Translations under genes and position numbers: made by a program
From: Diadema antillarum
Lineage: Eukaryota
Assembly (NCBI RefSeq): GCF_040938485.1
Contig: NW_027271431.1
Coordinates: 3,038,001 to 3,102,000 of the forward strand
Direction of reading: 5' to 3'
DNA: 64,000 bases
Shown: positions 1,296-6,879 of the stretch, piece by piece
Position numbering within the stretch: position 1 is the first letter of the stretch
Layout: each line of letters opens with the position of its first letter
Notes under the pieces: generated by a model
Seen by the model: the letters and a program-made list of their open reading frames with translations, nothing else
Database searches by the model: none
Told to the model about the DNA's origin: nothing

Positions 1296-2216
1296 AATTT
1301 TCCAAGATGAACATGAATCCACTGGAAGGTCACTGTCACCTGTCCCCGAATTACGCGCATCTCCCTTGAGGATACCAGCACCCTTCCTTGATCTCCGCCC
1401 TCTTGGCCAGCTCCGCAAAGTCTGCTGCGCGTGTCAGCGAGTGGGCTAAACGTGTGGATAAGAGTTCTGTGGGATATACACATTGGTTGAAGGAGTCCTT
1501 GAAGGTCAGAGGATTCCTTCCGTTGGCCTTACCGGAAGTGACGTATCGTTGGGGAGAAGTGTAGGTTCTACTCACAGAGAAATGCAAATGATGCCATTGA
1601 GCTAATGAAACCACTTTGCAACAGGTAAATGTTTAAACTTCAAAGAATTCAGTATTTTCTCTCAGTTGAATACCATGAATTGCATTGACGTGTAGGTCTA
1701 GATTAAGAAAAAGATGCTATTTGAAGTACCTGATGTTCTTTTCAAACTTGAAAATAAGACAGAGATTATCTGCGATGTTTACTAAAAAAACAAACAAACT
1801 CCACTTTGGTATTTTATTTGTATATTTTAGTGGAGCAGTGCTATCGGCATTAAACTATTCGGGACCCGGTATCACCATATTGATTTCATCAAGCCAACCC
1901 GATCATCTCAGACATTCCGGGTACTGTCGTCAACCCTGTGATGATGTAGGTCCACCTGTGAACACTCTAGCCTTCTATTCTGCCCGACAGAGTTGCCAAA
2001 GCCCTGACTAGGAGCCAGAGCCAGCCAGACTCAGGAATACAAGAAGGTTTAAAAACAACATTGCACAAGACATTCTTATTTGAATAAAGCAAATCACGTC
2101 TTTGAACACACTCCTTTATATAGACAAGCGTTGTGGCTGAAATCTTCGTTTAATCTCCTTGCAATGTACAGGAGGAACGATGGGTGACCTGCCGAAAATC
2201 TGTCGAGACAAGCTGA
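1296..2216 (+). pseudogene. Degenerate tandem paralog of the gene at 5202-6462; exon remnants about 1296-1624, 1831-2046 and 2172-2216
   Basis: Colinear nucleotide homology to exons 2-4 of the downstream gene. Splice sites are shared (gcaacag|gt; tacag|gaggaacgatggg). Translated blocks: PELRASPLRIPA, YSQRNANDAIEL, YSGPGIT, QANPIISDIPGTVVNP, EERWVT. Several frameshifts and stops relative to the intact copy (TAA at 1447-1449, TAG at 2009-2011). No clear first coding exon. Confidence 0.75.
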
Positions 2217-2882
2217 ATGATGGAGTGTCACCCTTGGCCGTTCCTGAGATAGAAAGTGGACGGAGAGAGTGGAGCAGAGGATTTGGCGTCGAGGAGACCG
2301 TGACAGCATGCCGGAAATTTACCGGGAAGCAGAGGATAGGCCTACTGGTGGCGGTAACAGTGCTGAAGAGCAGGAAGAATGGAAGCTCACAAAGAAGGTG
2401 AAACACAGAAACTATAAGGAGATAGAAGAGTCACGTACCATTTGGAGGAAGAAAGAAAATGCAGAAGAAACCCCAAGGGAGATGAGGAAAGACGAAGGGC
2501 AAAAGAACGATTGATATCATTCGTGTTTTGACAAACGTGCGAGAATTTTCGTGCCCTTCCTCAGGTGCTTGGTTCGGCATATTATGCGCATGCAGACGAG
2601 GCCAGAAACTGGGAGTTGCAATAAACTGGAATCGAACTTTAATGGAATTATAGAGTGATTCAAATATATTGCTTCTATTGTTATACAAATCGTGTACCCA
2701 GTACATCTGGCTGTGCAATGTGTTATGTGCAACTTATATTCCAAAAATCCAAACATTTCTCTGCGTGCGTGTGTGTGTGCCTTACATGTCTGTGAGACTG
2801 CCATAAATCAGGGAGGTGTTACAGAGATGGAGTGGCAACTCTTCGTAACTCATGCAAACACATGTTTGGGTTCAAGGCGTTA

Positions 2883-3751
2883 CAATGGGCCGAATGCATA
2901 AAACAAGCAATTGCTTGTAAGCAATTGCTTCAAGCAAAAGCACAAGCTCGTCTAGTAGAAGGTCTAGCTCAAGCATTTGCTTAAATCCATATGCATAAAC
3001 TTTTGCTTGTGCTTATACCTTTTGCTTGTCCCGCACAAGCAATTGCTTGCGTTTTCGACAAAAAGGACGTCACGCCTGTGCGAACACAAGAACAAAGGCG
3101 AGTGTGATAGCATGTATTTGAAAGGGCATGTGTGTACGGAAACATTTCCTGACATAGCAAATGAGCTATGAAATGACACTCATAAATGCACACCCACAGA
3201 CCCACACACACATCTATACACACACACACGTACTGGCTGATTCCCATCACTGCTTATAGCCCGGATGTTCCAGATCGCACGTGGAGCGAGGTCTCCTTGC
3301 TCTCCACCAAAGTCAGACATACCTATTTTTCATCACATTTTCGGTGCTAACCACTGGACATTCCCGTTGCTGAAACAAAAAGTTTTTTTACACTACTTAG
3401 GAGTAATTTCTTCTAGATTTATACCAATCCTGCACAAGTGTGGTCTTTCTTTTTTGATATGAAAAATTATACTTAAAAGGGAACGTCCCAGTTAAGCAAA
3501 AGCTCAAGCTCATTTTACAGAGCTTGGAAAATCGTAAGCAATTGCTAGCAAGAACAAGCAAAAGGTATGCTTTATGCATACGTTTTTAAGCAAATGCTTG
3601 GTCTCTAAGCAATTGCTTGCAGGCAACAAGCAATTGCTTGTGCTTGCTAGCAAAAGCTTCTGCTCGCAAGCAACTGCTTGTTTTTATGCATACGGATTCA
3701 AGTAAAAGGCTAGCACAAGCAATTGCTAGCGTTTATGCATTCGGCCCATTG
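2883..3751. mobile_element. Non-autonomous TIR DNA element (Harbinger-like termini) with subterminal arrays of the palindrome AAGCAATTGCTT
   Basis: Inverted ends caatgggccgaatgcataaa (2883) and tttatgcattcggcccattg (3751). About 10 copies of AAGCAATTGCTT or variants lie in both arms, around an unrelated core of about 450 bp. Confidence 0.7.
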
Positions 3752-5050
3752 GGATGTCTAGCATTCCATTACGCTTTGAAGTCATGCTCGGCACCGCTCT
3801 AGTTGCAAGACGAAGTTCGGAGACGAAGAACGCATTTTACCTTTCGTTGAATTACAAGCTTTATTTCACCGCAAAATTTTATATGAAATACTCGAATTGA
3901 TTTAGAATAGTTTAGGAAAGAATTCAGTATTATTAACATGTATTTCTAGTTTCTTCGTAAGTCGCAAATCGAAAGGAAATGAAAATTAGGCCCTCTTAAA
4001 AACCTAATTTTTTCTATATTTCGCACATTTCCGCATGTTAGTTTTCTATCTTTTAATGAGGGATATTTTGATCTTTCAAATAAAGTACTCCGTTAAAGCG
4101 TGTTCCAGCGTGTTTTTAAACTATTTGCTGTTAAAATTGTGAGTTTTACACTGCATTTTGATTCGCTGCTCCAATTCAAGGTACACAAATTCATTGTTGC
4201 CATCACATTGAAAGAGAGAGCGAATTGCAGTAGGAGCAAATATTTCTAGATGTGAGAGCGCTAGTCCCGATTATTGATGCTCTCTATTGTCAAAGCACAT
4301 GGGTAACACCTGTAGTTGAACGCATAACTTCTCGGCGGTGCCGCGCATGACTTCAAAGGAGAGCTTTAGTTGCCTCTCCTTCTCTAGCACCTCCCTGCAT
4401 AAATCAGAACCGCAAAGTCTTAAAGCATAATTCAAAACTCTCAGTGTGTGATCCACATTATGTATCGGTATGCAGTGATGTGCGAAAATTATATTCCAAT
4501 GCAAAGATATTTCTACTTGTCGTGTATCTTCAGTCTATATGTTTTCTACGTTGTTATCATTATGTTTGTGAAATTAATCTGTTTTTTTTTGTACTTTCAA
4601 TTGTTAAAGCTTTTAGTATTTTTTTCATCTACATGAAGATAAATTATTAACATAGAGATATTTTCCCTCTGCTGTATCTTATTTTTTCCGATGTTGCCTA
4701 TACAAGTCTTATTTGCCATACCATGACAACGACTCTCACTATAGCAACCAAGGTGGGTTGTTGTGTCTGATACGCGGAAAGATTGCGCAAAATGCTTATT
4801 ACGTCATAATTCCAAAAGAAGCACTGTAAAAATTGTTTTCTTTTTGCTCATTAAAAACAAAGATTGCTAGTTAAGTTTTGAATTAAAAAAAAAGAAAGTG
4901 CTGTGGGACAAGTTACTGGATATTAAAGGCGAGTCTCTGAAAGAATTCACATTATCTAAGGACCCTTTACCGAGAAAATTTAGGAACGAGCCTGTCAGGT
5001 AGCAATTGTTTCGTCACACGAAGCGCGTAGTGCGCGTACACACCTCACAC

Positions 5051-5086
5051 TATAAATAAGGCACTGTTGCAATGTAAACATTAGTC
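5051..5086 (+). promoter_or_regulatory. TATA box plus initiator of the 268-aa gene
   Basis: TATAAATA at 5051-5058 and an Inr-like TTAGTC at 5081-5086, about 30 nt apart and about 120 nt upstream of the ATG at 5202. Confidence 0.6.
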
Positions 5087-5201
5087 TATCGATTTTCTTC
5101 GTGCGACCTTTCATGCTGGAAGATTCCTAGCGTGCTTATTGCCTTTTGGTGGTAAAACTGATTCTATCGACAGTTCTCCATTTTGAACACAAGTGTTAGA
5201 A

Positions 5202-5315
5202 ATGGGTTGTCAACAATCAAAGACTGCCCTGTTTCCATCGATTGGACATCGAGATGGAAAACGACGAAGACGGCGTATTTGGTCGGGGCGTTTGCCATTC
5301 ACCAATCAAAATATG
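5202..5315 (+). CDS. Coding exon 1 of an uncharacterised 268-aa protein (MGCQQSKTALFPSIGHRDGKRRRRRIWSGRLPFTNQNM)
   Basis: ATG at 5202, 38 open codons, donor ATG|GTAACT in phase 0, matching the next exon; the MGCxxSK start fits a myristoylation/palmitoylation consensus. Confidence 0.6.
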
Positions 5316-5804: not shown

Positions 5805-5951
5805 GTAGGTCCTAAATGAACATTTCCTACAGCTTAAACTGAAATAAATATCTTCTCGCAGTTGAATCTACGATGATTGACCGTGAGCAAGTTTCATATT
5901 GCCATTTAATATTTGATATGTATATTCTTTTGTTTCTCTTGCTGTTTGCAG

Positions 5952-6289
5952 ACGTGTTGACTTTTGATCACTCGGGACCCGGTGTCACCACCACTTACCA
6001 AGCCAACCCAATCCCTGACATTCCGGGTACCGTGGTCAGCCCTGTCGATGATGTTCGTCCCCCAGTTGGACCACTCTACCCTTGTCGCGACAGGACAAAA
6101 ACTGAACTTTCCTTTAAACCCAGAGTTCGGTGGCGTTCTTTCCACTACCCAGAGGAGGTTGGAAACCTGACGAGTTGCCAAAGCCGTGACTCCATCCTCA
6201 GAAATGGAAAGAGTCAGACGCAGAATAACCATGACAACGAGATGACACACATCGGAAGACAACCAATACAGGCCCAAAAACACAAACAG
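5952..6289 (+). CDS. Coding exon 3 (DVLTFDHSGPGVTTTYQANPIPDIPGTVVSPVDDVRPPVGPLYP...QKHKQ)
   Basis: ttgcag| acceptor completes codon G+AC (Asp), 338 nt open, donor cag|GTGAGA in phase 0; many synonymous substitutions versus the paralog. Confidence 0.75.
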
Positions 6290-6426
6290 GTGAGACAAGC
6301 TCTACATTACATAAATCTTTCCCTGCAAAAGAATCAAATCCATTTTCTGAAGTCTTCATTCTAGACACTCGTATTAAGACACGCATGGTAACCACTGTTC
6401 ACTTCATCTTCTCTTATCTCATACAG

Positions 6427-6462
6427 GAGGAACGATGGGCGACTCGGCGGACATTCTTTTGA
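6427..6462 (+). CDS. Terminal coding exon (EERWATRRTFF*)
   Basis: Acceptor tctcatacag| is conserved in the paralog (EERWVTCR). Phase 0 gives a stop at 6460-6462, followed by a purine-rich 3' region and AATAAA signals. Confidence 0.55.
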   Translation, partial: EERWATRRTFF

Positions 6463-6848
6463 AAGTGGATGGATGACTGATACAGTTACCCTTGGCCGTG
6501 TCTAAGATGGAAAGAGGATTGAGAAGGGAAGATGAAGAATCTGAGGGGGAATGTGACAAAATGTCGGCAAAAGATGTGTCCTCGGAAAGTGGTGTTGTGT
6601 AAACGCCAGGAGACACCAAGAGTCGAGGACTAGAAGGAGAGAAGAAGGATGAAAATGAGGAGAAAGAGAATCCGAAAGAGAAGACAATTGGAAACGAGGC
6701 AGAGAGCTATTGAAGACTGGAGTAAATAAGACAAATCTGAAAAAGATGAGCAATGAAAACCACCAGATCTATTTCTGAGTTGACGAACAAAATGACGTAA
6801 TCATCAGCTACCAGGCAGTCCGTTATTCAGTCAGATAATGCTGAAGTA

Positions 6849-6879
6849 AATAAAGGTTTGAGCTGCAATGAGCAATAAA
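6849..6879 (+). terminator. Polyadenylation signals of the 268-aa gene
   Basis: AATAAA at 6849-6854 and 6874-6879, followed by GT-rich sequence. Confidence 0.45.

Follow-up and report, generated by a model that had tools for sequence, protein, structure and literature searches.

A spliced gene of a protein family found in sea urchins and a probable dead partial duplicate beside it in the genome of Diadema antillarum

The DNA considered here is a stretch of 64,000 nucleotides (nt) from the sea urchin Diadema antillarum (NCBI RefSeq assembly GCF_040938485.1, contig NW_027271431.1, positions 3,038,001 to 3,102,000 of the forward strand), which we call the window and in whose numbering coordinates are given unless a contig is named. 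Between positions 1296 and 6879 it carries a four-exon gene on the plus strand and, about 4.2 kb upstream of it, a colinear pseudogene. The gene model spans 5202-6462 (+) and contains 268 codons; the phases of its introns sum correctly, and three of three introns have GT..AG boundaries. An earlier reading of the sequence (the original prediction) had proposed this model, and its exon coordinates, phases, splice dinucleotides, TATA box and AATAAA signals were all verified. The parts of the gene are as follows.

4987..5201, plus strand: putative proximal promoter and 5′ untranslated region (UTR), conserved across paralog clades, with TATAAATA at 5051-5058.
5202..5315, plus strand: coding part of exon 1, 38 codons, with the MGCQQSK start, a poly-Arg run, then WSGRLPFTNQNM, and a GT donor.
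5316..5485, plus strand: intron 1, 170 nt, GT..AG, phase 0.
5486..5804, plus strand: exon 2, 106 codons and 1 nt, with predicted helix 1 and the first half of the conserved core (YSQRDVDDAIERILNHVAT).
5805..5951, plus strand: intron 2, 147 nt, GT..AG, phase 1.
5952..6289, plus strand: exon 3, 2 nt and 112 codons, with the remaining half of the core (DVLTFDHSG..PDIPGTVVSPVDD..YP) and a tail that evolves fast.
6290..6426, plus strand: intron 3, 137 nt, GT..AG, phase 0.
6427..6462, plus strand: coding part of exon 4, 11 codons, EERWATRRTFF followed by TGA.
6463..6879, plus strand: putative 3′ UTR, read from the sequence, with putative poly(A) signals AATAAA at 6849-6854 and 6874-6879.

The D. antillarum genome (1.75 Gb in 2963 contigs) was searched with exons 2 and 3. 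Ten further loci were found that contain all four exons in the same order, with the same ATG, intron phases, GT..AG boundaries and split codon, which is the Asp codon interrupted by intron 2 at the exon 2/3 junction. The stop after ...RR[KT]F[FL] is shared by the window gene and these ten loci, and exon 1 has its ATG and GT at 11 of 11 loci. Frames, splice sites and stops are kept at nine other loci, the exception being the locus C1425_62k. In protein databases the exons were searched singly, and a word-index search found the D. setosum RefSeq protein XP_072171632.1 (264 residues, P0001 below), which was used as a full-length stand-in for the 268-residue product. The junctions of P0001 coincide exactly with the exon ends in the window, and its identity to the window gene is 92%, 89% and 85% over exons 1, 2 and 3, respectively. 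Apart from minor substitutions, every locus and the D. setosum proteins also share the C-terminus ERWATRR[KT]F[FL] with the stop behind it. The gene model is supported because the same exons, phases and stop recur at ten loci and in the junctions of the D. setosum ortholog, and this recurrence argues that 5202-6462 is a genuine spliced protein-coding gene. Its family has no recognized domain. Two other readings of the interval were ruled out: an antisense open reading frame (ORF) at 5906-6298 as the coding sequence, since codon-wise constraint fits the plus frame, and a transposon origin of the gene, which is contradicted by its low copy number and conserved intron positions.

Contig C1011 (positions 312000-322391) is colinear with window positions 675-7426 at 96.5% identity, intergenic DNA, pseudogene and transposons included. 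It would be the other haplotype of the window locus, and the assembly seems to hold both haplotypes. Four copies on contig C1425 and five on C1167, one of them disrupted, appear to pair in the same manner, as do contigs C379 and C797. The copies on the first of these pairs form a tandem array with a period of about 4.8 kb (C1425 61000-78000 and C1167 831000-851000), whose copy number seems to differ between the haplotypes. Some array copies are damaged: C1425_62k has an in-frame TAG, exon 2 is broken at C1167_837k, and C1167_849k has an internal duplication in exon 3. Each haplotype thus has three loci with about 6-7 genes between them, in addition to the pseudogene of the window. The tandem pair with one intact member described in the original prediction does exist, but it is one part of a larger family.

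Paralogs of different clades resemble each other in their exons far more than in the DNA between them. Nucleotide identity of the window gene to the other clades is 78-91% in the exons, with exon 1 the most conserved (90-91%), versus 44-65% in the introns (44-53% for intron 1 and 53-57% for intron 3), and the 3′ UTR, at 46% identity between paralog clades, is not conserved. The 215 nt that precede the ATG, however, are 86% identical between clades whose introns are practically unalignable, and the TATA box and several blocks of 15-30 nt in the promoter and 5′ UTR are invariant in six loci. This conservation points to 4987-5201 being a core promoter and 5′ UTR. The identity could stem from shared regulation, from a function of the 5′ UTR or from gene conversion. 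The number of synonymous substitutions per synonymous site (dS) is low in exon 1 (0.19), which could likewise reflect constraint or gene conversion. Among the invariant blocks within 4987-5201 are ATTGTTTCGTCACAC, AAGCGCGTAGTGCGCGT, CTATAAAT and GTTGCAATGTAAACATTAGTCTATCGATT.

To count substitutions over the whole gene, whole-codon columns of exons 1-3 were pooled. The ratio of nonsynonymous to synonymous substitution rates (dN/dS) between paralog clades is 0.45-0.8 for the gene as a whole and is very uneven along it. In a core of 58 codons dN/dS is 0.09-0.13 at a dS of 0.53-0.63, with about 20 synonymous changes. Predicted helix 1 has a dN/dS of about 0.15-0.25, except for one of four comparisons, in which it is 0.79, and the N-terminal part of exon 2, the linker and the exon 3 tail have values of 0.6-1.0. 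The C-terminus encoded by exon 4 (6427-6459) is nearly invariant in Diadema copies, although the 70 residues that precede it are almost neutral. Its end, basic residues and then FF, is reminiscent of tails that bind coat proteins, as the KKFF of ERGIC-53 does. Inspection by eye of three short motifs, namely PRVRW as a PP1-type RVxF site, DHSG as a beta-TrCP-like site and the C-terminal FF as a signal, led to their rejection, as none of them fits its consensus or is conserved outside Diadema.

An exhaustive HMMER search with a D. setosum profile against 1.84 billion representative proteins returned four proteins at E<=0.001, all of them from sea urchins: two D. setosum representatives, Lytechinus variegatus LOC121414763 (E=6e-9) and Strongylocentrotus purpuratus LOC105445897 (E=1e-6). 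Another profile search brought in L. pictus LOC129261768 and two short fragments from ENA. RefSeq also holds four D. setosum paralogs of P0001, and every homolog is named ‘uncharacterized’. The sequences share the core Y-[SN]-Q-x-D-[VI]-D-x-A-I-[ED]-x-I-L, intron 2, D-V-[LM]-T-[FL]-D-H-S ... Y ... P-D-I-P-G-x-V-x-S-P-x-D; the family alignment has 27 invariant columns, and exons 2 and 3 of the window align with it throughout. Two camarodont genomic fragments from ENA (P0009 and P0010) part from the family alignment precisely where exon 2 meets exon 3, which suggests that the position of intron 2 is conserved into camarodonts. What the camarodont proteins have in common with the window gene is the core of about 60 residues, and they end soon after it. 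No MGC exon is present in the camarodont models or in those of the D. setosum paralogs, unlike in the window gene and P0001. In the S. purpuratus protein XP_011680330.1 (P0007), residues 1-120 contain a duplicated hydrophobic segment (YIYDVTSSFGTVFVVYGALLVLITVNLV, twice) ahead of the family sequence; this may be due to a chimeric gene model, or the segment may be a transmembrane anchor that replaces the lipid anchor proposed below.

Other databases gave no match that would assign the family to a known one. Pfam searches with every exon, the pseudogene ORFs and all ten family proteins yielded sub-threshold noise only, the best hit of the family profile among all PDB chains was unrelated (E=0.45), and ESM Atlas queries with the core and with the full-length protein yielded no usable hit by feature, while every structural template modeling (TM) score was <0.4. 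A literature search on five RefSeq/LOC identifiers found no paper citing them. As far as these databases show, the family is restricted to sea urchins (Diadema, Lytechinus, Strongylocentrotus); it is small and undescribed, with relatives already present in RefSeq as ‘uncharacterized protein’. The original prediction had anticipated an unrecognized and perhaps lineage-specific family, and it had also described the product as mostly low-complexity with short conserved islands. Both descriptions agree with what we find, the latter by virtue of structure prediction and the regional distribution of dN/dS. AlphaFold2 models of P0001 (from 5 sequences) and of the Lytechinus protein (from 18 rows) have a mean predicted local distance difference test score (pLDDT) of 48 and 51, respectively, so that most of the chain is probably disordered. 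The sole confident element in both models is the helix D-V-D-x-A-I-E-x-I-L (pLDDT 75-85), which has a predicted length of 12-14 residues and is the most amphipathic 14-mer of the protein.

The N-terminus has the sequence MGC[QHK][QL]SK at 11 of 11 loci and in P0001, with G2, C3, S6 and K7 invariant and the neighboring positions variable. The MGCQQSK of the window gene fits the PROSITE pattern PS00008, M-G-{EDRKHPFYW}-x-x-[STAGCN]-{P}, and has a Cys at position 3. In MGC-type proteins, such as Src-family kinases and G-alpha-i/o, Gly2 is myristoylated and Cys3 palmitoylated. Behind the motif lies a run of five to seven Arg or Lys residues (KRRRRR in the window gene), and the net charge of the protein is +11.

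Combining these features, we propose that the product would act as an adaptor in the cytosol, intrinsically disordered and tethered to a membrane. Myristoyl-Gly2 and palmitoyl-Cys3 of the MGCxxSK motif would form the anchor, which the adjacent poly-Arg cluster would reinforce. The constrained module of about 60 residues, comprising the amphipathic helix Y-S-Q-x-D-V-D-x-A-I-E-x-I-L and the downstream segment DV-L-T-F-DHS...PDIPG-x-V-x-SP, would serve as the docking surface for a conserved partner, and the long flanks would be fast-evolving linkers. Lipidation, membrane location, docking and expression are all inferred, and we hold this tethered-adaptor function tentatively, at slightly less than an even chance.

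The upstream unit consists of the following parts.

1296..1624, plus strand: pseudogene exon 2, which starts 15-19 nt inside the exon and keeps its GT donor at 1625.
1839..2046, plus strand: pseudogene exon 3, which retains its AG acceptor and its GT donor and has 208 nt compared with 338 nt in the gene.
2172..2500, plus strand: pseudogene exon 4 and a 3′-UTR-like tail, with GGAGGAACGATGGG conserved at the acceptor, followed by 69% identity and many indels.

In local alignments, exon 2 of this unit is 76% identical to that of the gene; for exon 3, whose first third can be aligned, the value is 84%. Exon 2 of the pseudogene, which as a whole runs from 1296 to about 2500, contains at least four frameshifting indels (+4, −1, −1 and −2) and an in-frame TAA; exon 3 contains frameshifts of +1, −1 and −2, a stop and four deletions totaling about 134 nt, with a net loss of about 133 nt. 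Introns 2 and 3 are retained together with their splice sites. Upstream of this unit, neither the 1.3 kb of the window nor 20 kb of contig yielded a counterpart, from any paralog type, of the promoter, of exon 1 and the intron behind it, or of the 15-19 nt that open exon 2. The colinearity and the lesions reported in the original prediction are therefore real, but the splice sites that the two copies share are those of introns 2 and 3, and nothing corresponds to exon 1.

The pseudogene is no closer to its neighbor than to the rest of the family: its exon 2 is 71.6% identical to that of the adjacent gene versus 68-71% to those of other clades. In a tree calculated with IQ-TREE from the concatenated DNA alignments of exons 2 and 3, it forms a third long branch from the same node, and three-way parsimony gives synonymous branch lengths per site of 0.149 for the pseudogene, 0.161 for the window gene and 0.138 for the array clade. 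Such equal branch lengths date the duplicate to the deepest family split in this genome, which would make the pseudogene as old as that split and not a recent copy of its neighbor. As D. setosum has both clades, the split predates the divergence of D. setosum. The pseudogene and the transposon block described next are both present in the allelic contig C1011.

The DNA between pseudogene and gene contains the following elements, to which no strand is assigned.

2809..4397: nested transposon block with outer inverted arms at 2809-2840 and 4368-4397.
2883-3751: 869-bp terminal inverted repeat (TIR) element inside the block, with perfect 20-nt terminal inverted repeats.
3774-4358: 585-bp TIR element inside the block, with 24-nt inverted repeats.

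The 869-bp element is a high-copy one: a first look at the genome gave 1273 candidates, and no fewer than 40 copies are full-length, with 89-97% identity. The 4.2-kb spacing between gene and pseudogene is largely due to this block. According to our model, the upstream unit would have arisen as an unprocessed partial tandem duplicate of exons 2-4 roughly when the deepest paralog split took place, would have lacked the promoter and exon 1 from the start and drifted neutrally since, and would later have been pushed apart from the gene by transposons. In its tandem position, retained introns and splice sites, missing 5′ end, lesions and neutral substitution ratio it resembles other unprocessed duplicative pseudogenes, among which it is not unusual; it is merely old and separated from the gene by transposons.

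That both copies had been under purifying selection before the upstream one decayed was a claim of the original prediction, and the history it implies, in which the upstream copy was once a working gene, has to be weighed against a duplicate that was dead on arrival. Some differences in the conserved blocks are indeed synonymous, and introns 2 and 3 still have intact splice sites, as a former gene would. The examples of synonymous differences cited earlier, though real, were selected, and synonymous sites do not account for most substitutions between the copies: in the 124 codons that align in frame, the differences by codon position are flat (28/26/29) and dN/dS is 0.66. Assigned to branches, the pseudogene lineage has 13 synonymous and 34 nonsynonymous changes, in keeping with a neutral expectation of 26% synonymous (binomial p=0.74), versus 14 and 14 on the gene branch (binomial p=0.0075). 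In the core, where live copies have a dN/dS of about 0.1, the pseudogene branch shows 4 synonymous and 12 nonsynonymous changes and the gene branch 6 and 0 (hypergeometric tail, calculated by hand, about 0.003). The synonymous excess between the copies therefore comes from the lineage of the live gene alone. Because its 5′ end is missing, with no promoter, exon 1 or intron 1 within >20 kb, and because its branch pattern is neutral, the upstream copy was most likely dead on arrival and never functional, and an earlier life as a selected gene appears distinctly unlikely. That a functional gene and a dead partial duplicate lie side by side at this locus we regard as very probable. The opposite doubt, that not even the downstream unit makes a functional protein, being instead a decaying or non-coding transcription unit or a repeat- or transposon-borne sequence, could draw on an allelic dN/dS of about 1 and on the broken array copies (the TAG in C1425_62k and the disrupted C1167_837k). 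It is very improbable in view of a core dN/dS of about 0.1 with some 20 synonymous changes, the open frames, splice sites and stops at nine other loci, the conservation of the core across distantly related sea urchins, the low copy number, and introns that are conserved in position but not in sequence.

For the protein itself, a close parallel in predicted layout is offered by the small membrane A-kinase anchoring proteins (AKAPs) smAKAP (AKAP19, C2orf88) and AKAP18-alpha, which likewise combine a myristoyl/palmitoyl N-terminus, disorder and one short conserved amphipathic helix. AKAPs consist of a 14-18-residue amphipathic helix and a targeting part, the latter being N-terminal myristoylation and palmitoylation in smAKAP (PMC13025221). 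The window gene might accordingly encode a protein of this kind, with a lipid anchor and a helix that docks the regulatory-subunit dimer of protein kinase A (PKA). Its MGCxxSK start fits this assignment, as does VDDAIERIL[NT]HV, the most amphipathic 14-mer, which agrees with the AKAP helix pattern in every Diadema member. That pattern, [AVLISE]xx[AVLIF][AVLI]xx[AVLI][AVLIF]xx[AVLISE], is a loose one, however, and 10.5% of P0001 shuffles match it. The Lytechinus, Strongylocentrotus and ENA homologs do not match it, their ILCPP ending the helix after about 12 residues, and AKAP docking is therefore not the conserved function of the family. Furthermore, no PDB chain, not even that of an AKAP, shows sequence similarity to the family profile, and the most conserved residues reach well beyond the helix, the module extending about 45 residues past it. 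With no detectable homology to smAKAP or AKAP18-alpha either, membership in this group is quite improbable. GAP-43, BASP1 and MARCKS are acylated, basic, intrinsically disordered membrane proteins and resemble the predicted product of the window gene in an N-terminal acylation signal, an adjoining polybasic cluster and a disordered remainder. They are A/E/K-rich and lack a constrained internal module, whereas the sea-urchin family is R/P/S-rich and has one, and their Pfam families gave no match at E<=1 above threshold with any exon or family member. A soluble, non-lipidated, basic and disordered protein, in which poly-Arg would act as a nuclear or nucleolar signal or as a nucleic-acid-binding patch, is consistent with the KRRRRR run, the net charge of +11, the disorder predicted throughout and the camarodont models without an MGC start. 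It is nonetheless unlikely, since the invariance of G2, C3, S6 and K7 at 11 loci and in the D. setosum ortholog, amid variable neighbors, would be difficult to account for if the N-terminal motif had no use.

Taken as a whole, the explanation that we favor, a functional gene for a lipid-anchored disordered adaptor plus a partial duplicate that was dead on arrival, has in our estimate a probability of roughly 0.6, and several observations weigh against it. The branch counts come from alignable blocks only and are small, and the overall Fisher test between pseudogene and gene branches gives p=0.08, which leaves room for a short functional period of the upstream copy. The two alleles of the window gene differ with a dN/dS of about 1.0 (17.5 nonsynonymous and 5.5 synonymous changes), so that constraint outside the core, where nearly all of these changes lie, is weak; the allele on C1011 has W changed to R in the conserved WSGRLPF motif. 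The same pair of alleles differs by a 3-codon indel in the basic run. The predicted myristoylation of Gly2 and palmitoylation of Cys3 are read from a sequence pattern only. Finally, the camarodont models start at a Met in exon 2, or with the hydrophobic segment in S. purpuratus, and have no MGC exon; the lipid anchor may be specific to Diadema, or these models may be incomplete.

A more specific form of the adaptor proposal has a slim chance of being correct. The family could be a sea-urchin invention, a lipid-anchored scaffold whose helix-plus-PDIPG module folds onto an enzyme, for example a kinase regulatory subunit or a phosphatase, and tethers it at the plasma membrane. The tandem array would then supply variants with different linkers, and such a scaffold, if real, would be an independently arisen functional analogue of the small membrane AKAPs.

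Elsewhere in the window little else was recognized. Rfam found no RNA family in positions 1-9000, and Pfam gave no match for ten long ORFs outside the locus, so that no neighboring gene was identified. Two runs of N, of 149 bases each, occupy 8664-8812 and 42254-42402.

A gene next to a dead partial duplicate of itself is a common arrangement, and the present case, solid and fairly ordinary, changes no general concept. The pseudogene provides a small internal control for neutral evolution at the locus. With the gene, a cleanly delimited family joins the taxonomically restricted genes of sea urchins. Each haplotype has 6-7 of its genes; their promoter is conserved, and their products contain a strongly constrained module of 60 residues and are predicted to be anchored by two lipids.

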